This document shows, piece by piece, positions 5,113-62,232 of a stretch of 64,000 nt of DNA. Made by a program: the position numbers and the translations under genes. The first letter of the stretch is position 1; each line of letters begins with the position of its first letter. The notes beneath the pieces were generated by a model. The model searched no databases. It had not been told where the DNA came from and worked only from the letters and a program-made list of their open reading frames with translations. Location: the IMG/VR virus record IMGVR_UViG_3300044591_002232, positions 124,001 through 188,000 of that record; one strand, given 5' to 3'.

Positions 5113-6369
5113 ATGTCACACCTTTATGAACCATATAAACCTCAAGATGATGCTTTTGGTAGGGCAAGAGTTTCTGAGCCATTTACCCTAGGTGATTATA
5201 AACATCTTTATTCAATTGATCCAGATTTTATTGATGTTTATTCTGGAATCGGCGCCACATTGACTTTTAACGTCAACCAGGCAGCCGCGAATCTTCAATC
5301 TGGTATTTCTACTAATGGTTATACAATTCATCAGACAAAAAGATATCATCATTATATGCCAGGTAAATCTCAATTGATTTACTCCTCTTTTAACTTTGGA
5401 CAACCTCAACAAAATGTAATCAAGAGGACCGGTTATTTTGATGATAGGGACGGAATTTATTTTGAACAGGATCAAAATGGAAATCTTAATTTTGTAATTC
5501 GTTCTTTTGTTAATGCCGGTATTGGTAATTCGGAAAGAAGAATTCCACAATCTCAATGGAACAAAGATCAACTTGATGGAAGTGGCGTCTCTGGATTTGA
5601 TTTAGACATTACAAAAACTCAACTTTTCTTTACCGATTTTGAATGGCTTGGTGTTGGTAGAGTTCGTTGTGGATTTAGTCTTGATGGTAAGAATATTGTT
5701 GCACATGAATTTTATAATTCTAATAATGTTGATACCGTTTACATGTCAAATCCCAATCTCCCAGTAAGATGTGAAATTAGAAACACTGGAACTCAAGTTG
5801 GTGCTGGGGGGTCTTTTATCCAAATTTGCTCTACTGTGATGAGTGAGGGTGGTTATACAGAGGCTGGAAGAGAATTTTCTCATGCAACTTCTTTAAGATC
5901 TGTTGGTGTTGGATCAACAGTTCCTGTTCTGGCAATTAAACTTAAAAATTCTTTTAAAGGTTATCCAAATAGAGCTACGGTAAAATTAGAGGATATTTCA
6001 GTTTTTAGTGTTGGATCAAATATAAAGTATGAGGTAGTAAAAATTAATAGTGCCGTGGGTTTGAGTACAACCGGGACCTGGATTTCTGAACACCCCGAAT
6101 CTGTTGTTGAATACAACCAAACTGCAACCGGAGTTGGAACAACTCTATTTGAGGATTTTATGAGTGGATATGCTTCTGGTGACAGTCAAAATGTAAATAA
6201 ACCAGCCGCAACTTCTTCTAACATTCAATCTGGCCCCACATCAAAGAAAAATTTCTTGTCTCAGAATTATAATTCAACCAATTCTGAGATTTTTTCTGTA
6301 ATAGTTACCAATATTGGTTCTAATTCAACAAATGTTGGTGTTTCTTTGAGGTGGAAAGAGATTTATTGA
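5113..6369 (+). CDS. Hypothetical virion/structural protein, beta-sandwich rich
   Basis: 418 aa ORF, G/S/T rich, translationally coupled in late region. Confidence 0.6.
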   Translation: MSHLYEPYKPQDDAFGRARVSEPFTLGDYKHLYSIDPDFIDVYSGIGATLTFNVNQAAANLQSGISTNGYTIHQTKRYHHYMPGKSQLIYSSFNFGQPQQNVIKRTGYFDDRDGIYFEQDQNGNLNFVIRSFVNAGIGNSERRIPQSQWNKDQLDGSGVSGFDLDITKTQLFFTDFEWLGVGRVRCGFSLDGKNIVAHEFYNSNNVDTVYMSNPNLPVRCEIRNTGTQVGAGGSFIQICSTVMSEGGYTEAGREFSHATSLRSVGVGSTVPVLAIKLKNSFKGYPNRATVKLEDISVFSVGSNIKYEVVKINSAVGLSTTGTWISEHPESVVEYNQTATGVGTTLFEDFMSGYASGDSQNVNKPAATSSNIQSGPTSKKNFLSQNYNSTNSEIFSVIVTNIGSNSTNVGVSLRWKEIY

Positions 6370-6410
6370 CTAAATAGTTTTAATAAATAACTAAAGAAAC
6401 CCCGTTAAAA

Positions 6411-6746
6411 ATGTCGCTTCTTGATAAAAAATCCTCAGTAAAATTAAATTCTGGACAACTTGTTCAGGGAGTTGCTGTAGTTGATAGTGACGGAAATCAA
6501 GTTACTTCATTTGGGGGTAGTGGAGGTGGTTCTACAACTGTCGGGGTAGTAACAGTTTCTAATACCGTTTCTAATCCAGTTCCGGTTATTTCTGGATTAA
6601 ATATTCCAAACCACAATAGAGTATCCCTTGCATATTCGGGATCTAATTTAGTTGGTGTTGCATACAGTTTTAATAATGTCGGTGTTGCTACTTTAACTCT
6701 TTCTTATGATGGGAGTAATAACCTTATTTCGGTCGTTAGGAGCTGA
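6411..6746 (+). CDS. Hypothetical protein, G/S/V rich
   Basis: ORF track; preceded by CTAAATA near 6370. Confidence 0.55.
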   Translation: MSLLDKKSSVKLNSGQLVQGVAVVDSDGNQVTSFGGSGGGSTTVGVVTVSNTVSNPVPVISGLNIPNHNRVSLAYSGSNLVGVAYSFNNVGVATLTLSYDGSNNLISVVRS

Positions 6747-6751
6747 TTTTT

Positions 6752-7450
6752 ATGCAATATAAGTTCAACCCATTTACTGGAACCCTGGATGCGGCTGGCG
6801 GCGGCAACCCTGCTGGCAGTAGTGGCGACATTCAGCTAAACCTGGATGGCGCCTTCGGTGCTGTTTCCAGTTTTCGCTGGATTACTGGTGAATTGCAGGT
6901 TCCGGGTGACATCAAACTTGATGACGGCGGCGGCTTTACTACAACAATTCAGCAAGTAACGCCGACCAAGAACAACGTCATCTCATTCCCCGATCAGACG
7001 GGGACTGTGGCCTTGGTGGGCGGCTCTACTGGGCAGGTTCTCTACAACCTGAACGGTGCTCTTGCTGGCACTGACACTATCTTCAATGCCACGACTGGCA
7101 CCCGGTTCACGCTGCCATTCGGCTACGGGATCGGCGCTGGAGGCACGCAGACCCAGGCTACCAGCAAGAGCACTGGGGTGACGCTGGACACCCGCTGCGG
7201 GCAGGTAACGATGAATGCGGCTGAGCTGACAGCCAACACGGCGGTGTCGTTCACGCTCACCAACAGCCAGATCACGGCGACCGACCTGATCATCATCAAC
7301 CACGTTTCAGGCGGCACGACCGGGGCGTACATGTTCGGTGCCCGAGCGGCTGCTGGTTCGGCCACGATCACCGTGCGGAACGTGACTGCTGGGGCTCTGA
7401 GCGAAGCGGTTGTGATCGCTTTTGCAGTAGTAAAAGCCACTACTAACTGA
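6752..7450 (+). CDS. Tail fibre/adhesin-like protein; start of GC-rich island
   Basis: G/T/A-rich beta-structure sequence; base composition shifts to GC-rich shortly after the start codon. Confidence 0.55.
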   Translation: MQYKFNPFTGTLDAAGGGNPAGSSGDIQLNLDGAFGAVSSFRWITGELQVPGDIKLDDGGGFTTTIQQVTPTKNNVISFPDQTGTVALVGGSTGQVLYNLNGALAGTDTIFNATTGTRFTLPFGYGIGAGGTQTQATSKSTGVTLDTRCGQVTMNAAELTANTAVSFTLTNSQITATDLIIINHVSGGTTGAYMFGARAAAGSATITVRNVTAGALSEAVVIAFAVVKATTN

Positions 7451-7464
7451 GGAGATCACCACCC

Positions 7465-7869
7465 ATGGCTTCATTCACTGTCGAGATTCCCGATTATCTG
7501 CTTCCGGCCCTGGTGGCAGAGTTCAGTCTGGTGCAGGGCAAGGTGCCTGCGGCAACGCCTGAGGAGTATTTCAAGGCGAGCGTGGTGGAAATCATCCGCC
7601 AGCGTGCCGAGATCTACAAAGTTGGGCCGTACTTCGTCGGTGCGGTTGACCCGCAGTTCAATCAGGACGGGACACCGTATGGCTGGGCGCCGCCGCCTGA
7701 GCGGCCTGCGGCACTCACTGTCGGTCAGACATGGATTGATGGCAGCGGGCAGGAGTGGACGGTGGTGCAGGCCATTAACCCTGACGGCACGTTTGCTGCA
7801 GATGATCCTGAAACGCCCGAGCGCGAGTCTCTGGCCTGGGTGCAGACGGATGGAGGTGGCGACGGATGA
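7465..7869 (+). CDS. Hypothetical protein (GC-rich island)
   Basis: ORF with GAGGAG RBS upstream; overlaps next start. Confidence 0.6.
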   Translation: MASFTVEIPDYLLPALVAEFSLVQGKVPAATPEEYFKASVVEIIRQRAEIYKVGPYFVGAVDPQFNQDGTPYGWAPPPERPAALTVGQTWIDGSGQEWTVVQAINPDGTFAADDPETPERESLAWVQTDGGGDG

Positions 7870-8654
7870 CGTTGATATGGCGCCCAGGCTACATAACAAC
7901 ATTTGCTGATCCTGATGTTCAGTCGTATTTGACAAGGGTAGAGGAGGCCGATAATCAGGGATTGGAATACCCCGTGGCGGTGGCGATTGATGAGTTTATT
8001 AGGGGCTGCAAGGCTGATGGGATCTGGAGCGCTATCAAGGCGAGTTGCATCATGGCCGGCGCCCGCACGCTGGCCGGTGCGCTGGTGCCGCTGGTGGGGC
8101 CTGCGCCGACAAATATTGGTTTTGTGGCGGGGGATTACAACAGGAAGACGGGGTTGGTGGGGGGTGGCTCCGTTAAGGCGCTTAACAGCAATAGGGCTCG
8201 TAGTGCCGACCCGATCGACTCTTTCCACGCTTCCCTGTATTTAAGCACTACTGGCGGTAACGCTCTGTTTGGGTTGGCCAATGACGGCCAATTTGATCAA
8301 ATGCTTGCCGTTAATAGCAGCACGGGCACTTCTTTTAGGGGCAGAATTGTAGCTATTGACAACAGGGTAACTGGCTTTGTTGGGGCCAGCAATACTGCCG
8401 CTGCCTTAACGGCAAGAGCGAACGGCACCAATTCAACCAATACAGGCGCAATGTACGGGGCTTTTGCTAACTCAGGCAAATACTATGTATTTGCCCGAAA
8501 TACTGGAACAGGCGACGCTGATGGGGTCGTTAGTAGCGGCTCTCCTACTTTCAGCCGTCTCGCCTTCTACAGCATAGGCGAATCCCTAAACCTCGCCCTG
8601 CTGGATGCCCGCATCACCACCCTAATCAACAGATTCGCAGTCGTAATACCATGA
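7866..8654 (+). CDS. Hypothetical virion-like protein, paralog A
   Basis: Shares GCKADGIWSAIKASC..AGARTLAGALVPLVGPAPTN and RLAFYSIGESLNLALLDARITTLIN with 8651-9445. Confidence 0.7.
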   Translation: MTLIWRPGYITTFADPDVQSYLTRVEEADNQGLEYPVAVAIDEFIRGCKADGIWSAIKASCIMAGARTLAGALVPLVGPAPTNIGFVAGDYNRKTGLVGGGSVKALNSNRARSADPIDSFHASLYLSTTGGNALFGLANDGQFDQMLAVNSSTGTSFRGRIVAIDNRVTGFVGASNTAAALTARANGTNSTNTGAMYGAFANSGKYYVFARNTGTGDADGVVSSGSPTFSRLAFYSIGESLNLALLDARITTLINRFAVVIP

Positions 8655-9445
8655 GCCCAATTTACACTCCAGGAAAGTTAATACTTCGCCGGACGTATAT
8701 TGGCCTGGACGACCCTGACGCTGCGGCATACATCACAGCGGTCGAGATTGCAGATGGTCAGCCCTTGGAGATTGAGGTTCGGGTGGCAGTTCATTCGTTT
8801 GTAAAAGGCTGCAAGGCGGATGGCATCTGGAGCGCGATCAAAGCCTCCTGCATCCTTGCCGGCGCCCGCACACTGGCCGGTGCGTTGGTGCCGCTGGTGG
8901 GGCCTGCGCCGACGAATTTTAATTTCGTGGCTGGTGACTACAACCGCAAGACGGGGTTGGTGGGGAATGGGAGTACGAAGTATCTGGACAGCGGCAGGAA
9001 TAACAACGCTGATCCGCAAGATAGCAAGCATCTGGCAGTATTCAAATCAAGCAACGCAGGCAAGCTGGGGGGCCTCTTAGGCACTGCGTTGAACGCAAAT
9101 GGTACATCATGGATTTTTGAAGGTTTTAGTGGAGGCAGCGATACCTATCGAGTCAATACAAACCCTTCAATCATACTCTCCCTAGGATCTTATCCTGACA
9201 CGGGATTTATAGGCATTAACCGTTCGTCGTCGAGTAACTCAACGCGAAGGTATTCAGGGGCAACAATCTCTGATGCCAGCACCTCTCAAGCGCCATTAGC
9301 CGCAAATGCTCTGGTGTTTAGTGCCGCAGGCCAGCCAACCGACGCCCGCCTCGCCTTCTACTCCATCGGCGAATCCCTCAACCTCGCCCTGCTGGATGCC
9401 CGCATCACCACCCTAATCAACACGTTCGGAGCTGTTATCCCATGA
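8651..9445 (+). CDS. Hypothetical virion-like protein, paralog B
   Basis: Tandem paralog of 7866-8654; ATGA overlap. Confidence 0.7.
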   Translation: MSPIYTPGKLILRRTYIGLDDPDAAAYITAVEIADGQPLEIEVRVAVHSFVKGCKADGIWSAIKASCILAGARTLAGALVPLVGPAPTNFNFVAGDYNRKTGLVGNGSTKYLDSGRNNNADPQDSKHLAVFKSSNAGKLGGLLGTALNANGTSWIFEGFSGGSDTYRVNTNPSIILSLGSYPDTGFIGINRSSSSNSTRRYSGATISDASTSQAPLAANALVFSAAGQPTDARLAFYSIGESLNLALLDARITTLINTFGAVIP

Positions 9446-9515
9446 CCCATGTAATGAGCTATAGCAAACCAACCCCATTTTCCACTGCCTCTAACACTGC
9501 TGCGGAGGTAACACC

Positions 9516-10172
9516 ATGAGTTGGCTTATTACTGCCAAGCAGTACATTCCCGCCGTAATTGGCGAGCCATTCGGTGGCGGCTTCTTCGCTGGCTATATCA
9601 GCCACACTGCTGATGGCAACCCCACTCATGCGCTGATCGTGGCGCCTAGGGCTACTGGGGCGACGGGAACGGGTTATACGTTGACGACGCAGAGGCAGTG
9701 GAAGACAACAGACACAGCGACTGCAGGAGCGAACAGCGTATTTAATGGGGCAGCAAACACCGCTGCCATAGTGACGGCAGGCATCGCCGATCATCCTGCC
9801 GCGCAGTTCTGTGTTGGCTTAAGCATTGGTGGATTCACTGATTGGTACTTACCAGCAGTGGCTGAACTAAATATAGCTTATTTCAACCTCAAGCCAAACA
9901 CTAACTCAAACTTTACCGGTGCAGGATCTAACATATACGCCGTGCCAAGTCGCGGCAGTAATTTCACAGCAGGCAATCCGGCGCAAACGGCGCTAACAGC
10001 GTTTGTTAGCGGCGGGGAGCAATTCCAGTCGTCTGACCATTGGGCATCATCCGAAGCTAGTGCAACAAATGGCAATTACTATGGCTTCAACAGTGGGTTT
10101 CCAGGTAGCAGAGCAAAAACGACCTCAACCACGGCGGCGAACGTTCGCGCCTTCCGCCGCATCGCCCTCTAA
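9516..10172 (+). CDS. DUF1566/C-type-lectin-fold-like protein
   Basis: GGFTDWYLPAVAEL and C-terminal HWASSE...N...F..G....K....NVRAFRR pattern. Confidence 0.55.
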   Translation: MSWLITAKQYIPAVIGEPFGGGFFAGYISHTADGNPTHALIVAPRATGATGTGYTLTTQRQWKTTDTATAGANSVFNGAANTAAIVTAGIADHPAAQFCVGLSIGGFTDWYLPAVAELNIAYFNLKPNTNSNFTGAGSNIYAVPSRGSNFTAGNPAQTALTAFVSGGEQFQSSDHWASSEASATNGNYYGFNSGFPGSRAKTTSTTAANVRAFRRIAL

Positions 10173-55694: not shown

Positions 55695-55820
55695 ATGTCC
55701 GAATTACGTTACCAGATTTCTCGTCTTTGGCTACCTTTCCAATATTGGGGTCAGCTCATGTATTCTTATGATATTAGTACCAGGGAATATTTTTATTCAT
55801 TGATTAATGGTAAATCGTGA
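55695..55820 (+). CDS. Small hypothetical (ATG 55695 preferred because a promoter lies in 55614-55690)
   Basis: ORF track plus promoter motif. Confidence 0.4.
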   Translation: MSELRYQISRLWLPFQYWGQLMYSYDISTREYFYSLINGKS

Positions 55821-56242
55821 TTCAAAAAAGTCATCTAAAAAAAAGTATTCTTGATCAGGCCATTGCCGTTGCCATGGCCTCGGATGCCCCTAAGAAAATG
55901 GGAGCCATTCTTCTTAAGAGAAATAAAATCATTTCGGCTGCGGTTAATGATTATGAAAAGACCCATCCGGTTCAGTATTGGGCCGCTCAAAATGCTGCCA
56001 AGATCTTCAATGATGATTCTCTTGCAAAAAAGGTATTTTGTCATTGTGAGATAAATTGTCTAATTAAGGCAAAAGAGACCGCTGATACTATTGTTGTTTG
56101 CCGTGTTGGTGGTCATGGCAAGAAATACATAAGAAATGCCAGACCCTGTAAATTGTGTTCGGTTTTTCTTATAAAGAATAAAATTTATAATATCCATTAT
56201 TCCACCGATAATGGATTCGTTTATGAAAACTGGGAGGATTAA
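55817..56242 (+). CDS. Cytidine/dCMP deaminase-fold zinc protein
   Basis: HCEINC (HxE) and ARPCKLC (PCxxC). Confidence 0.75.
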   Translation: MIQKSHLKKSILDQAIAVAMASDAPKKMGAILLKRNKIISAAVNDYEKTHPVQYWAAQNAAKIFNDDSLAKKVFCHCEINCLIKAKETADTIVVCRVGGHGKKYIRNARPCKLCSVFLIKNKIYNIHYSTDNGFVYENWED

Positions 56243-56243
56243 A

Positions 56244-56396
56244 ATGTCACTTATTTCACAAAAAGATCGAAAACTTGCTATTGAGGCCTTGGAGTCTTAT
56301 GCATATAAGTTCGATCTATCACAAGAAAAACGGATGGAGCTAAATGCCTTGATCAATTGGATTAAGTTAGAAATTTATAAGAACGAGCCGGTTTAA
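56244..56396 (+). CDS. Small conserved hypothetical
   Basis: MSLISQKDRKLAIEALE..LINWIKLE; GGAGG RBS. Confidence 0.55.
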   Translation: MSLISQKDRKLAIEALESYAYKFDLSQEKRMELNALINWIKLEIYKNEPV

Positions 56397-56495
56397 GAAC
56401 TGGCACATACGCCTTACTTTAGGATTTATCTGTGCTATATACTATGGATGTGGGATAGACCACGCCAAACTTAAAATTCTAAGGAGTTTAGAATC

Positions 56496-57542
56496 ATGAA
56501 AAAATACGACGCAATTGTTTTTATTGGAAGATTTCAGCCTTTTCATAATGCTCATCTAGAAATTGTAAAAAGAGCATATGAACTGACTGATAATCTCATT
56601 ATGATTATTGGTTCTCAGTATAAACCAGTAACCTACAAAAATCCATTTCAAATTTCTCTTGAGCACCTGAATACTCATAGTTACTGGTCTGCCTTGAGGC
56701 AATCCATTTTAGAAGTGACTTCAGAAGAAGCTCCACTAGAAATTGAAATTCAAGAAGATATTTATGGTGATACCAAGTGGTGTAATGAAGTTCAAGAAAA
56801 GGTAAAATATTGTCTTGAGACTATTTCACCATCTGCTAATGTTGGTATCATCGGTTGTGAAAAAGACGAGACTTCTTATTACCTGAAGATGTTTCCACAA
56901 TGGGAACTAATTGAGGTTCCTCTTGAGCAAAATCTAAGTGCAACTCAGATCAGGGAACTCTACTTTGTAGAAGAACCGAATATGGACTTTGTGAAAAGTG
57001 TTGTTCCAGAACAAATCTTCAACTATCTTGATAGTATGAAGAGTTCTGAATGGCATAATCATATCGTAAATGAGCGTAGATTTGTCGAGAAATATAAGTC
57101 TCAGTATGCTTCCTTGCCCTGGCCACCAATTTTTGTTACAGTAGATTCTGTAGTGTTTCAATCTGGTCATGTCTTGATGGTCCGTAGAAATGCCTATCCT
57201 GGAAAGGGCCTGATTGCCTTGCCAGGCGGTTTTCTAGACGCAAACACCGATTCCTCCCTAGAAGATGCTATGATTCGAGAACTCCGAGAGGAAACCGGAC
57301 TTAAGGTTCCTTCTCCGGTTCTTCGTGGATGTATTAAAAATACTCATGTATTTGATGATATTTATAGAAGCAGCCGAGGGCGAACAATTACTCATGCCTT
57401 TAATATTGTTCTTCCTGATGGAGAACTTCCAAGAGTAAAAGGTGGTTCTGATGCTGATAAGGCATTCTGGATTCCTTTCTCTGAACTTGACCCAAGAGAG
57501 TGCTTTGAAGACCATTATCAAATTATTCGATATTTTATATGA
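56496..57542 (+). CDS. nadM: Bifunctional NMN adenylyltransferase / ADP-ribose pyrophosphatase (NadM-Nudix)
   Basis: IGRFQPFHNAH, KNPF, LSATQIR, ALPGGF..DAMIRELREETGL Nudix box. Confidence 0.93.
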   Translation: MKKYDAIVFIGRFQPFHNAHLEIVKRAYELTDNLIMIIGSQYKPVTYKNPFQISLEHLNTHSYWSALRQSILEVTSEEAPLEIEIQEDIYGDTKWCNEVQEKVKYCLETISPSANVGIIGCEKDETSYYLKMFPQWELIEVPLEQNLSATQIRELYFVEEPNMDFVKSVVPEQIFNYLDSMKSSEWHNHIVNERRFVEKYKSQYASLPWPPIFVTVDSVVFQSGHVLMVRRNAYPGKGLIALPGGFLDANTDSSLEDAMIRELREETGLKVPSPVLRGCIKNTHVFDDIYRSSRGRTITHAFNIVLPDGELPRVKGGSDADKAFWIPFSELDPRECFEDHYQIIRYFI

Positions 57543-58030
57543 AAACTATCAAAGGAGATCTAATTAAACTTGCCGAAAAAGGTAATTTTGATATTATTAT
57601 TCAAGGTTGTAACTGCTATAATGTTATGGGTGGGGGGTTGGCAAAACAACTTGCAGACCGATATCCCAAAGTAAAACAAGCGGATATGTGTACAACTAGG
57701 GGGGATAAATTAAAGTTGGGTAGGTTTACTACGGCTCAAATAAACACAGGAAAAACAATTTTTACTGTGATAAATGCCTACACTCAGTATGAAATGAGTA
57801 ATACTAAAGATGTATTTGAATATGGTGCCTTTGAAAAATTCTTAGAGTTATTTTCTAAATGTGTCCCTGATTATACACGGGGACCACATAGAAAAGTAAG
57901 CATTGGATTCCCTCAAATTGGCGCTGGACTTGCTGGTGGTGATTGGAGTAGAATTTCCAAAATGATTGAAAAGTTTTCAGAAGACGTTTCTGATTATGCT
58001 GATGTCACAGTAGTAGAATATCAACCTTGA
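57539..58030 (+). CDS. Macrodomain (Appr-1-p processing) protein
   Basis: IKGDLI, GCNC..MGGGLA, NAYTQ, FPQIGAGLAGGDW. Confidence 0.85.
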   Translation: MKTIKGDLIKLAEKGNFDIIIQGCNCYNVMGGGLAKQLADRYPKVKQADMCTTRGDKLKLGRFTTAQINTGKTIFTVINAYTQYEMSNTKDVFEYGAFEKFLELFSKCVPDYTRGPHRKVSIGFPQIGAGLAGGDWSRISKMIEKFSEDVSDYADVTVVEYQP

Positions 58031-58041
58031 GGTAAAAAATT

Positions 58042-58350
58042 ATGCCATGCTTTACACCGGAACCTACGCAAGAAGAAATTAAACTCGAACAAAAAAGTAA
58101 TAACAATAAAAAATATGGAATTAATAAAACTAATTCTGAATTAATTACATATTTGTTGAATATGTGTTGTGAAATGGGGGAAGTAATTTTTGAGCTTCAT
58201 ATGCAACATAGACTATCTAATGATACTTTGGCATGGTATCAGCAACATAGAGATAGAGATGATAAGGTAAAGGAAATTCAAACTGAATTATCTAAATTAG
58301 CCTTAAAAAAAGAAAGTCTTGAGCGAGAACTTAAGGCATTGAATGCTTGA
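58042..58350 (+). CDS. Hypothetical protein
   Basis: ORF track. Confidence 0.55.
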   Translation: MPCFTPEPTQEEIKLEQKSNNNKKYGINKTNSELITYLLNMCCEMGEVIFELHMQHRLSNDTLAWYQQHRDRDDKVKEIQTELSKLALKKESLERELKALNA

Positions 58351-58421
58351 CAGGTGTTAAAGTCATAAAAACACAATCAGGCGATAGACGCCGAAATTAA
58401 ACCTATTTTAAGGAGTTTAAA

Positions 58422-58955
58422 ATGGACCTAAACAAAAATTTACTGCTCAATTCGGATTCTTACAAGTATTCGCAGTTTAATCAATATCCCCCACAGACGG
58501 AAGGTGTATTTTCTTACATTGAAAGTCGTGGTGGTCATCACGATGAAACTCTCTTCTTTGGTCTTCAGATGTTTCTAAAAGACTATCTGATGAAGCCAAT
58601 TAGAATGGAAGATATTGATATTGCCGAGGCAATTATTCAGGCTCACGGTGAACCATTCTACCGTGGTGGTTGGGAATACATCGTCAAAAAGCACGGTGGA
58701 CATCTCCCCGTAAGAATCAAGGCTGTCCCTGAAGGAATGGTAATTCCTGTCAAGAATGTTTTGCTTACAATTGAAAATACCGACCCAAATTGCTACTGGT
58801 TGACTAGTTTCTTAGAGACTGCTCTACTTCGCTCGATTTGGTATCCGACGACAGTTGCGAGTAATTCTTATAATTCTAAGAAACTTATTCTCAATTATCT
58901 TATCCGCAATGGAGACCCAAATCTTATTGATTTTAAACTTCATGATTTTGGTGCT
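58422..58955 (+). CDS. nadV: Nicotinamide phosphoribosyltransferase exon 1
   Basis: NSDSYKYSQ, YIESRGG, LETALLRSIWYPTTVAS, ends LHDFGA. Confidence 0.93.
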
Positions 58956-59873
58956 TAACTCGGGCACCTAACTTTGTGAATTGCTGGAACCCCTAAGTTG
59001 TTTATACAATATGGAAATCAGCAGCCAAGACTACTATTAGTAGTAAGGTTCAGAGGCCATCGAAAGGGTTATTATTAATAACACTAAGTAGAGTACACTC
59101 AAGCGAGTGGAAGCGCAAAGACAGTAAAAAATACTGTAAGATATGGTCCAATCTTTATCGAAAGATAAAGCAGTTCGTATTCAACATAAATACTTCTAGA
59201 CCAAAATCATAAAATATTTATGTTAAAATTATTAGAAACCGTACCTAGTTTAGAAACATTTAGAGGCTATTCAATTTCTGATGATGGAAGAATTTTTTCT
59301 CATAAGACTAATAAATTTTTAAAACCATCCATAAGAATGGGAAATGGGTGTGCTTATGAAAGAATTGGTTTGACAGATTCAAATAGAGTCCGTAAAACAT
59401 TTTCAATTCATAGACTCGTTTGCATAGCTTTTAAATACAATCCCAATCATTTAAATTTAACTGTAAATCATATAGATGAAAATACTTTTAATAATCGTAT
59501 TGAAAATCTAGAATGGTTAACAATTGGAGAAAATATTAGATACTCTAAAGCAAATAAAACTTATGTTGGGGATCCTGATAAACTTACAACAGAGTTTAAT
59601 GAGGGTGACTACACAGTAAAAGAATTTGCCGAAAAGTATAATACTCCTTTAAATACTATGTGGGATATTTTAAATAAACTAAGTTCAACACAAAACAACA
59701 GAAAAAGAAGAGTATTTAATAAAGAGCTACGACTAGAAATTGCTTTAATGAGAAAATCAGGAAAGTCATTGAAAGAAGTTGCCAAATACTTTAATTGTTC
59801 TGAATCTATGGTTTCTAAGGTGTTTGATGAATACGAACGGGGTGTGTTTAGCGACCACACTTGAATAACTCCG
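58956..59873 (+). mobile_element. Group I intron (IA2-like) carrying an HNH ORF
   Basis: P1 ggtgct/gggcacc with U-G at splice site; P aattgctggaa, Q aatcagcag, R gttcagaggcca, S aagatatggtcc; P3 ctttgtg/cgcaaag; terminal G at 59873; P10 ctcg/cgag. Confidence 0.9.
59220..59864 (+). CDS. Intron-encoded HNH (NUMOD4-HNH type) homing endonuclease
   Basis: YSISDDGRIFS, IHRLVCIAF, VNHIDENTFNNRIENLEWLT. Confidence 0.88.
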   Translation: MLKLLETVPSLETFRGYSISDDGRIFSHKTNKFLKPSIRMGNGCAYERIGLTDSNRVRKTFSIHRLVCIAFKYNPNHLNLTVNHIDENTFNNRIENLEWLTIGENIRYSKANKTYVGDPDKLTTEFNEGDYTVKEFAEKYNTPLNTMWDILNKLSSTQNNRKRRVFNKELRLEIALMRKSGKSLKEVAKYFNCSESMVSKVFDEYERGVFSDHT

Positions 59874-60770
59874 CGAGGAGTATCTTCTTTAGAATCCGCA
59901 GGAATTGGTGGACTAGCTCACCTAGTCAACTTTAAAGGAACTGATACTGTTGCGGCACTTCTTTATGGTAAAGAATTTTATCACGAAGATATTGCCGGAT
60001 TTAGTATCCCAGCATCCGAACATAGTGTTGCGTGCTCGTATAATGCAATTCCAACTGTAGAAATAATTGATGAAAAAAATGAATTATCTTACATTCGTAG
60101 AATGTTAGAATTTTTATACACCCATCAAATGGTATCTATTGTTGGTGATGCATACGACATTTATAATTTTATAAATTTAATGGGTAGTATAAAAGATGAA
60201 ATTATTGAAAAAACAAAAGATAACAAATTTGTAATTCTTCGCCCAGACAGTGGAAACCCAGTGGAGGTTGTTTTAAAGTGCGCCCAACTTTTGGATAATC
60301 ACTTTGGAAGTACTATGAACTCTAAGGGTTATAAGGTTCTAAATCACGTCAGACTCATTCAAGGGGACGGTGTGAATTATGAAACTATTGACCGGGTTCT
60401 TCACGTTCTAGAAGCAAATGGATACAGTTCGGATAACATTGCCTTCGGTCAAGGTGGCGGATTGCTTCAACACGTAAATCGTGATGATTTTAAATTCGCA
60501 ATGAAGTGCAGTTCGGTAAATGTAAACGGAACCTGGCGTGACGTTTATAAAGACCCTGTAACCGACCCAGGCAAAACATCTAAAAAAGGTAGACTTCAGC
60601 TCATCAAAAATGAACAAGGAGAATATCAGACTGTTCCAGAAAGACCCTGGAATAAAGACGAGTTAGTAACTATTTATGAGAATGGTCAACTTTTGGTTGA
60701 TTATACTCTTGAGCATGTAAGAATTAATGCAAGCCAATGCTTGCACAATTTCTTCGCTAAAGCAGAGTGA
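59874..60770 (+). CDS. nadV: Nicotinamide phosphoribosyltransferase exon 2
   Basis: Starts RGVSS; SIPASEHS, VGDAYD, RPDSG, IQGDG, AFGQGGGLLQ, KTSKKG; in frame with track ORF 60102. Confidence 0.92.
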   Translation, partial: RGVSSLESAGIGGLAHLVNFKGTDTVAALLYGKEFYHEDIAGFSIPASEHSVACSYNAIPTVEIIDEKNELSYIRRMLEFLYTHQMVSIVGDAYDIYNFINLMGSIKDEIIEKTKDNKFVILRPDSGNPVEVVLKCAQLLDNHFGSTMNSKGYKVLNHVRLIQGDGVNYETIDRVLHVLEANGYSSDNIAFGQGGGLLQHVNRDDFKFAMKCSSVNVNGTWRDVYKDPVTDPGKTSKKGRLQLIKNEQGEYQTVPERPWNKDELVTIYENGQLLVDYTLEHVRINASQCLHNFFAKAE

Positions 60771-60800
60771 TATAAATACCTCAGGTTTAAATAACTTGAG

Positions 60801-61046
60801 GTGTTTTTTATGCTTAAAATTAGATGTAGAATGTGTGGAAATGAGGTACATGGTTTTGGAACCTGCGGGTGTCCAAATATGGCATCTATCCGCAACGATA
60901 AAATCACGGCCCTGGATCTGTCTCAGGTGGTTATGCTTGAGACTTATGAAAAGGCCTCAAATAAGCATCTGACCAATTCGGATCTTATGTGGCAAGAGGA
61001 AAGGAAACAACGTGGAGTAAAAAGGCTGGACTTTGAAGTTCGATAA
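60801..61046 (+). CDS. Small Cys-rich conserved hypothetical
   Basis: CRMC..CGCPN..DLSQV. Confidence 0.6.
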   Translation: MFFMLKIRCRMCGNEVHGFGTCGCPNMASIRNDKITALDLSQVVMLETYEKASNKHLTNSDLMWQEERKQRGVKRLDFEVR

Positions 61047-62157: not shown

Positions 62158-62232
62158 CCGGTTATCGCCTAACTTGGTATGGCACCTCCTTTGGGAGGAG
62201 GAAAAATTTAAGTTCAAATCTTAATAACCGGA
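62158..62232 (+). tRNA. trnP: tRNA-Pro(UGG), CCA not encoded
   Basis: Acceptor CCGGTTA/TAACCGG, anticodon stem CCTCC/GGAGG with TGG, T arm TTAAG-TTCAAAT-CTTAA, discriminator A. Confidence 0.88.

Follow-up and report, generated by a model that had tools for sequence, protein, structure and literature searches.

In the autogenous translational operators of phages (the T4/RB69 gene 43 DNA polymerase operator and the MS2/PP7 coat-protein hairpin on the replicase start), a hairpin with a sequence-specific loop and a free stem is placed at or just upstream of the Shine-Dalgarno (SD) sequence and AUG, and a phage protein binds it to repress translation. The guanidine-II riboswitch (mini-ykkC) consists of two small hairpins with conserved ACGR loops, variable stems, and a variable linker, and controls translation start. 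NAD metabolism genes carry two riboswitches, NAD+-I (nadA motif) and NAD+-II (pnuC motif), the second of which acts by hiding the SD. CsrA/RsmA sites present GGA in the loop of a short hairpin overlapping the SD, with a second site 10-20 nt upstream, which is the geometry expected for a dimeric binder. In the eukaryotic iron-responsive element, a 5′-proximal hairpin with a fixed loop (CAGUGN), a bulged C, and a free stem is found on several mRNAs of one pathway and is read by IRP1 (aconitase), a metabolic enzyme that moonlights as an RNA binder. NrtR operators, which are DNA palindromes with conserved half-sites, lie upstream of bacterial nadV and nadM.

Here, we describe a leader RNA of two hairpins, found in front of the NAD-salvage genes nadM and nadV in many unrelated phages and bacteria. 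The first hairpin (P1) has a variable stem and a loop (R)AUAGA, and is followed by a G-poor linker of 3-15 nt; the second (P2) holds the SD GGAG at its tip, and its 3′ arm reaches the AUG. The placement of a fixed loop on a free stem near the SD and AUG is shared with the phage operators, but this element has two hairpins, sits on two or more genes of one metabolic pathway, is also found in bacterial chromosomes, has loops (ANAGA and others) unrelated to those of the operators, and has no known binding protein. In contrast to guanidine-II, the two loops (ANAGA, 5-6 nt, and G-GAG-Y) differ from each other, the P1 loop changes by lineage, the SD is in the P2 tip rather than after it, and the downstream genes are nadM, nadV, and small nad-locus ORFs rather than guanidine detoxification genes; no ligand is known. 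NAD+-I (tandem bulged stems with a conserved ACANCCCC-type core) and NAD+-II (stem, internal loop, and SD-containing pseudoknot) have many conserved bases and sit on nadA or pnuC. No match to either model, to guanidine-II, or to any other Rfam family was found for the leaders, either in the window at gathering thresholds or on four phage and eight bacterial loci at E up to 1-5, and no pseudoknot partner for the P1 loop was found by inspection. With respect to CsrA/RsmA, P2 has GGA at its tip, but the P1 loop has AGA, or UGA/GUA in other loop classes; in addition, the loop class follows the nad cassette and not the host, and the motif occurs in cyanobacterial contigs and in cyanophage B3, in a lineage that probably lacks CsrA. 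The iron-responsive element provides the logic proposed below, although the enzyme-RNA link is only inferred here. NrtR shares the target genes and the purpose, but in the present element the arms vary freely and only the center is fixed, on one strand.

Structure of the nadM and nadV leaders

The window analyzed is a 64,000-nt stretch of DNA (IMG/VR record IMGVR_UViG_3300044591_002232, positions 124,001 to 188,000) from a phage genome of 249,820 bp. Its NAD-salvage locus contains the following features, all on the + strand:

56445..56467 (+), P1 hairpin of the nadM leader; core stem 56449-53 paired with 56460-64, loop GAUAGA at 56454-56459
56468..56475 (+), G-poor single-stranded linker of the nadM leader
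56476..56494 (+), P2 hairpin of the nadM leader, AUUCUAA-GGAGU-UUAGAAU; SD GGAG at 56483-86, stem ending 1 nt before the ATG
56496..57542 (+), nadM, encoding a bifunctional NMN adenylyltransferase / Nudix ADP-ribose pyrophosphatase
57539..58030 (+), macro-domain protein; its start overlaps the nadM stop, and it has no motif of its own
58042..58350 (+), 102-aa ORF (MPC...) of unknown function between the macro gene and nadV
58380..58392 (+), P1 hairpin of the nadV leader, GGCG-AUAGA-CGCC; loop at 58384-58388
58403..58425 (+), P2 hairpin of the nadV leader, 9 bp with GGAGU at the tip (58412-16); the 3′ arm contains the ATG at 58422-24
58422..58955 (+), nadV exon 1 (NAMPT N-terminal domain)
58956..59873 (+), group I intron carrying an HNH/NUMOD4 homing-endonuclease ORF at 59220-59864
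59874..60770 (+), nadV exon 2 (NAPRTase-family catalytic part)
60779..60809 (+), terminator-like hairpin (CCUCAGG...CUUGAGG) followed by UGUUUUUU, read from the sequence downstream of nadV

Gene assignments were based on Pfam matches (CTP_transf_like and NUDIX for nadM, NAMPT_N and NAPRTase for nadV, NUMOD4 and HNH_3 for the intron ORF) and, for nadM, on annotated homologues in phages. The Pfam Macro match was weak (20.2 bits against a cut-off of 22), but BLAST matched phage genes annotated as macro domain, and the family was present in 16 related loci. The 102-aa ORF had no Pfam hit; a similar MPC... ORF at another locus (L021:6758-7117) carries its own motif copy. The intron matched Rfam RF00028 at 58931-59170 (75.9 bits against gathering 50); the exon ends in U and the intron ends in G. 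Exon 1 ends at ...HDFGA, where intact homologues continue RGVSS, and the frame continues RGVSSLESAG from 59874.

The first-pass annotation had noted a hairpin with a shared GATAGAC core upstream of both genes, and both hairpins were confirmed at the positions given there (GTGG-GATAGA-CCAC at 56450-56463, which extends to 56445-67 with a bulge, and GGCG-ATAGA-CGCC at 58380-58392). They lie 33-36 nt before the ATGs at 56496 and 58422. GATAGAC alone was not unusual (7 hits in the window against 5.7 expected), whereas the extended pattern GATAGAC-N0-4-GCCRAANTTAAA occurred only at these two places, with 0 hits in 100 shuffles. Two corrections were required. The CGCC.AA.TTAAA stretch described as following each hairpin is shared only within this phage and its close kin, and is not part of the conserved motif. 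The second hairpin had been missed: TAAGGAGTTTA is the tip of a stem-loop of 7-9 bp (56476-56494 and 58403-58425) that holds the SD and reaches the start codon. Both leaders folded into P1 and P2 as the minimum-energy structure (z = -3.5 and -3.2; 0 of 200 shuffles folded as well).

The design was not a general one in this phage. No other gene start in the whole genome had an ATAGA-loop hairpin in this context, and the ATAGA-loop hairpins found elsewhere sat inside genes at chance frequency. SD hairpins of 7 bp or more occurred at only 3 of 404 SD-bearing starts in the genome.

Conservation and covariation

Dozens of nadM and nadV leaders from viral contigs keep both stems through compensatory changes. 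Alignment of whole leaders with MAFFT broke the 3′ arms, and fixed windows and model-guided alignment were used instead. A gapless P1 alignment of 43 leaders was 84% paired against 47% in shuffles, and the covariation score was 0.90 against 0.20 (reached by 0 of 500 shuffles). In the model-fitted alignment of 48 leaders, P1 was 86% and P2 was 99% paired, with double-sided changes at 15 of 16 pairs. It should be noted that the model-fitted alignment leans toward the structure of the model, and that P1 sequences were selected for having at least 4 inner pairs, so only the outer pairs of the gapless alignment are unbiased. Across 53 leaders, the linker was 3-15 nt long and not conserved in sequence, and the loop-to-AUG distance was 30-39 nt. 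Within P1, only A1, A3, G4, A5, and the closing G-C pair were fixed.

A -10-like or TATAAATA box was read by eye a few nucleotides before P1 in many leaders; a simple sigma-70 scan found no promoter directly before either leader of this phage.

Association with NAD-salvage genes in phages and bacteria

All 68 covariance-model hits in the viral loci were on the gene strand: 34 at nadM, 25 at nadV, 7 at small ORFs inside nad loci, and 2 that are likely false. In this genome, the nadM leader was hit at 56445/6-56495 (E 6e-7), and the best hit was the nadV leader at 58375-58424 (E 8e-10). When nine whole phage genomes (146-379 kb) were searched, only nadM, nadV, and small ORFs in nad loci were found, including nadV genes located 315 kb and 38 kb from nadM. 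P2-type SD hairpins of 7 bp or more were found at 40 of 67 nad starts against 15 of 620 other starts.

The motif also precedes chromosomal nadM and nadV in bacteria, where 58 hits were obtained, all on the gene strand, at nadM, nadV, and two SPFH genes. Model searches of whole bacterial genomes scored only 150 of about 650 candidates and missed known sites, and say nothing about the bacterial regulon. Loop classes followed lineage (ANAGA, GUUGA, GGAGA, and G(N)NGUA), whereas P2 stayed constant. Whole lineages used a different loop for both genes at once: Comamonadaceae use GUUGA, and Eneladus-like jumbo phages use G(N)NGUA. Taken together, the covariation of both stems, the genome-wide searches, and the recurrence in bacteria support the inference of the first-pass annotation that this is a pathway-specific RNA element shared by nadM and nadV; that it coordinates their expression is inferred from its position.

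A putative translational operator

In the absence of functional or binding data, we tentatively read the element as a translational operator. In this reading, P2 is a metastable stem that limits 30S binding by holding the SD at its tip, with its 3′ arm reaching or including the AUG. P1, a stable hairpin at or near the mRNA 5′ end, would be the recognition site of a sequence-specific trans-acting factor that sets how often P2 opens. The small number of fixed P1 positions, and the replacement of the loop for both genes of a lineage while P2 does not change, point to a trans factor rather than to a ligand pocket.

Leader and gene travel together between unrelated phages and bacteria. Among the ORFs of at least 60 aa in this phage, only NadM, NadV, and PhoH had BLASTP homologues in all four other, very different motif-bearing phages compared, although such a search would miss a small or fast-evolving regulator encoded elsewhere in the genome. 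PhoH was rejected as the trans factor because it is present in the motif-less KP15, XZ1, phiN3, Yen9-04, and XaC1 and absent from a complete motif-bearing phage. No ORF family beyond nadM, nadV, and the macro gene was common in the flanks of viral loci, and none was common in bacterial flanks. The most economical candidate for the factor is therefore one of the encoded enzymes, NadM or NadV, although neither is a known RNA-binding protein. That would be autogenous repression, possibly modulated by NAD+, NMN, ADP-ribose, or ATP. Some phages (KP15, BUCT608, and Vibrio XZ1) keep a P2-like hairpin without P1; P2 can therefore work without the proposed recognition hairpin.

Alternative explanations

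An unlikely but surviving alternative is a constitutive, self-insulating ribosome-binding module with no sensor, in which P1 is a 5′-terminal hairpin that protects the mRNA from 5′-end-dependent decay and keeps the linker single-stranded as a ribosome standby site, and P2 sets a low, context-independent translation rate for enzymes that consume PRPP and ATP. The module would be kept because the cassette moves between genomes. The start of P1 a few nucleotides after -10-like or TATAAATA boxes, the G-poor and variable linkers, the persistence of P2 alone in some phages, and the clear horizontal movement of the cassette between genomes that share almost nothing else agree with this view. However, a purely thermodynamic role does not explain why A1, A3, G4, and A5 stay fixed across phages and bacteria whose stems share no sequence, why both genes of a genome always use the same loop class, or why no other gene in phage genomes of 146-379 kb uses the design.

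Somewhat less likely, P1 and P2 together could form a new, very small riboswitch that senses NAD+, NMN, ADP-ribose, or nicotinamide without any protein. Ligand binding would fix P2 and hide the SD, so that salvage enzymes are made when NAD+ falls, and phages and bacteria would switch on NAD reconstitution exactly when NAD-depleting defense systems strike. The motif is a portable unit in unrelated phages and several bacterial phyla with no shared protein found besides the regulated enzymes, which is typical of riboswitches, and it is tied to one cofactor pathway; an SD-sequestering stem is a usual expression platform, and guanidine-II offers a precedent for a riboswitch made of two plain hairpins with conserved loops. 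Against this, only about 5-7 nucleotides are conserved outside the SD, and there is no junction, internal loop, or conserved linker. The wholesale replacement of the P1 loop in some lineages (GUUGA, G(N)NGUA, GGAGA) is unlike ligand-contacting cores, and loop position 2 varies within a single genome. By inspection, only scattered matches of 3-5 bp, and no consistent complementarity, were found between the P1 loop and P2, the linker, or the early coding region.

The least likely possibility is that P1 acts during transcription, as a boxB-like antitermination or processivity site or a pause or attenuation hairpin, or that the repeat is a DNA operator for a regulator such as NrtR: although P1 is promoter-proximal, with a short stem and a purine-rich pentaloop as in boxB, and bacterial nadV and nadM may often be under NrtR, the fixed distance to the AUG and the constant pairing of P1 with an SD hairpin point to translation, no terminator-like site was found in 56150-58500 (P1 being followed by A/C-rich linkers), the first loop base in the main class is A and not the G needed for the GNRA-like boxB fold, and the freely varying arms with compensatory changes including G-U pairs and the gene-strand-only model hits fit RNA and not a dimeric DNA-binding site with conserved half-sites.

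Implications for NAD salvage

NadV and NadM form the NARP2 pathway, by which phages rebuild NAD+ after bacterial defense systems destroy it (bioRxiv 10.1101/2024.02.11.579819). No paper describing the motif, or how these genes are controlled, was found. The leader adds a widespread motif without a match in Rfam, and provides a concrete 50-nt RNA on which to test whether an NAD enzyme moonlights as an RNA-binding repressor or whether a further NAD-related riboswitch exists. It also makes available a simple sequence marker for finding NAD-salvage cassettes and their unannotated companions, such as the small ORFs and SPFH genes that carry the same leader. A dedicated, strongly covarying leader RNA that travels with the genes between unrelated phages and bacteria would imply that expression of this counter-defense is regulated after transcription.

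Genomic context of the leaders

The window spans bases 124001-188000 of a complete 249,820-bp virus record with terminal repeats, whose nearest named relatives are the T4-like Synechococcus phages B3 and B23. The genome has approximately 36% G+C, apart from a stretch at window positions 6001-10000 with 50-54% G+C. The NAD-salvage locus and its surroundings have the following layout.

55817-56242, dCMP/cytidine deaminase gene just upstream of the nad locus
56496-57542, nadM (NMN adenylyltransferase + Nudix), preceded by a leader
57539-58030, macro-domain gene overlapping the nadM stop codon (ATGA)
58042-58350, 102-aa ORF of unknown function
58422-58955, nadV exon 1, preceded by a leader
58956-59873, group I intron within nadV
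59220-59864, HNH/NUMOD4 homing-endonuclease ORF carried by the intron
59874-60770, nadV exon 2
60771-60778, TATAAATA, the T4 late-promoter consensus
up to 60809, terminator-like hairpin and U run after nadV, immediately following TATAAATA
60811, start of the next ORF
62158-62232, tRNA gene (Rfam RF00005, 54.7 bits) downstream of the nad locus

The intron matched Rfam RF00028 (75.9 bits), although it was missed by the whole-window scan at gathering thresholds. The exon ends in U and the intron ends in G, and related phages such as B3 have an uninterrupted nadV. Phage B3 also has a tRNA cluster after nadV, and dCMP deaminase also lies near nadM in the jumbo phages XaC1, Yen9-04, Munch and Hallingskeid. 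The macro-domain family recurs in 16 related loci; an ADP-ribose-binding or -processing domain inside an NAD-salvage operon fits handling of NAD breakdown products. NadV and NadM together constitute the phage NAD+ reconstitution pathway NARP2, which has been described previously.

Two hairpins precede nadM and nadV

The first-pass annotation reported a hairpin with a shared GATAGAC core upstream of each gene (56450-56463 and 58380-58392), and both hairpins (P1) were confirmed. The heptamer GATAGAC alone occurred at chance frequency, whereas the extended shared pattern occurred only at these two places and in none of 100 shuffles. No other such site was found at a gene start in the 250-kb genome. 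A second hairpin, P2, had been missed by the first-pass annotation; it occupies 56476-56494 before nadM and 58403-58425 before nadV, carries the Shine-Dalgarno (SD) GGAG at its tip, and ends at, or includes, the start codon. Both leaders folded as P1+P2 at minimum free energy (z = -3.5 and -3.2). Among 404 SD-bearing candidate starts in this genome, only three had such a hairpin of 7 bp or more, and two of those were nadM and nadV.

Conservation in phages

A search of IMG/VR with NadM returned 55 loci. In most of them, and in phage B3, the nadM and nadV leaders showed the same architecture. P1 has 4-11 bp of unrelated sequence around a loop AUAGA (sometimes RAUAGA and rarely ACAGA or AAAGA), with a closing pair that is almost always G-C. 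The linker is 3-15 nt and G-poor, P2 has 5-9 bp closing on G[GAG]Y, and the loop-to-AUG distance is 30-39 nt. A gapless alignment of 43 P1 hairpins was 84% paired, against 47% in shuffles, with all four Watson-Crick pair types at most positions and a covariation score of 0.90 against 0.20. Because the four inner pairs were a selection criterion, only the five outer pairs are unbiased, and these were 50-86% paired.

A covariance model built from five seeds gave 68 hits in 55 sources, all on the gene strand: 34 preceded nadM, 25 preceded nadV, 7 preceded small ORFs inside nad loci, and 2 looked false. In the 48 best hits, P1 was 86% and P2 was 99% paired, 15 of 16 pairs showed double-sided changes, and no shuffle reached the observed values, although that alignment is fitted to the model. 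P2-type hairpins of 7 bp or more occurred at 40 of 67 nad starts, against 15 of 620 other starts in the same loci, and several of those 15 were the small ORFs just upstream of nadM.

In several viral contigs, a family of 124-137 aa proteins (..GIWxVxGEDPNCDxGG..GFWxWGxGG.. plus a coiled-coil tail, no Pfam hit) sits directly upstream of nadM and carries the leader motif in place of nadM (contig positions L019:3621-3992, L047:3454-3837, L048:3592-3999 and L050:3589-3999). It may be an unrecognized companion of the NAD-salvage pathway. The 102-aa ORF between the macro gene and nadV (58042-58350) starts MPC..., has no Pfam hit, and resembles by eye a 120-aa ORF in another locus (L021:6758-7117) that has its own motif copy.

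Pathway specificity

The refined model was run over nine whole phage records of 146-379 kb and gave 1-4 hits each at the E-value cut-offs used (1 in one set of searches, 0.1 in another); a tenth record of 608 kb gave no hit. The hits with E below 0.002 were all nadM, nadV or nad-locus ORFs, and four weaker hits were checked and set aside. In three of these genomes nadV is not next to nadM, lying 315 kb away in one and 38 kb away in two, and the model still found it as the only other strong hit. Roseobacter phage DSS3P8 had exactly two hits, its nadM and nadV leaders.

Occurrence in bacteria and variation of the P1 loop

We retrieved 80 bacterial and archaeal contigs encoding close NadV relatives. 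They gave 58 model hits, again all on the gene strand, lying directly before nadV and before the nadM that usually sits upstream; in two genomes, a hit also lay before an SPFH/Band 7 gene. This flotillin-like gene, downstream of nadV in two gammaproteobacteria, carries its own copy of the motif, and Brevundimonas phage Bambus has a flotillin gene beside nadM and nadV (contig positions L216:3082-4110, L189 2942-2992; L236:579-1967). Hosts included Gammaproteobacteria with finished chromosomes (Hahella, Halioxenophilus, Neptuniibacter) and cyanobacteria. A few metagenome bins labeled Bacillaceae or archaea may be viral. Contigs binned as Nitrosarchaeum and Heimdallarchaeota (L158, L203) encode NadV at 57-65% identity to the phage protein, with the full bacterial/phage-type leader and SD, and are probably viral or misbinned sequence. 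In these bacteria, P2 is longer and pairs both the SD and the AUG.

Leaders that the model missed carried the same architecture with another P1 loop. Comamonadaceae use GUUGA on both nadM (16 loci) and nadV (14 loci), with covarying stems, and four cyanobacterial nadM leaders use GGAGA. Eneladus-like jumbo phages (Yersinia fHe-Yen9-04, Xanthomonas XaC1, Erwinia pEa_SNUABM_49 and Hallingskeid, Salmonella Munch) use G(N)NGUA. P2 was the same in all classes. Klebsiella phage KP15, Stenotrophomonas phage BUCT608 and Vibrio phage XZ1 showed a P2-like SD hairpin without a recognizable P1.

Comparison with known RNA families

No matching family was found in Rfam 15, either at gathering thresholds or at permissive E-values on phage and bacterial leaders. 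Full-text searches found no description of an RNA element on nadV or nadM, although subscription journals were not covered and a prior description cannot be fully excluded. In its proposed action the element works like phage translational operators and like IRE/IRP logic, and it resembles guanidine-II in outline, but it failed at least one defining feature of every named family tested. The structure, covariation, gene association and distribution of the motif are shown; the finding is real, is far more general than could be seen in the first-pass annotation, and appears to be undescribed.

Possible mode of action

We compared all ORFs of at least 60 aa of this phage with those of DSS3P8 and three other motif-bearing phages whose genomes were retrieved whole. 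Only NadM, NadV and a PhoH-like ATPase had BLASTP homologs in all four, and PhoH was present in motif-less phages and absent from a complete motif-bearing one. No further gene family was common in the flanks of viral or bacterial loci. The leader therefore moves with its gene as a self-contained unit, and its partner must be one of the two enzymes, a factor too small or too divergent for this comparison, a universal cell component, or a metabolite.

In many leaders, -10-like boxes or T4-late-type TATAAATA boxes lie a few nt upstream of P1, which would put P1 at the 5′ end of the mRNA, although a simple sigma-70 scan did not call a promoter before either window leader. This position also fits the rival view of a stabilizing, insulating hairpin. 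A metabolite pocket is hard to reconcile with the tiny conserved core, with the free second loop base within single genomes, and with the wholesale change of the P1 loop in some lineages while P2 stays fixed. A host factor is unlikely, because the loop class follows the cassette and not the host.

Both genes of a genome always use the same loop class, as a shared, co-evolving protein partner predicts. We therefore tentatively favor a translational operator. Translational control is a strong inference from the anatomy, whereas the binding of a protein to P1, with autogenous control by NadM or NadV as the most economical guess, is inference only. In this reading, P2 would limit 30S access to nadM and nadV, and P1 would be the site bound by the protein.
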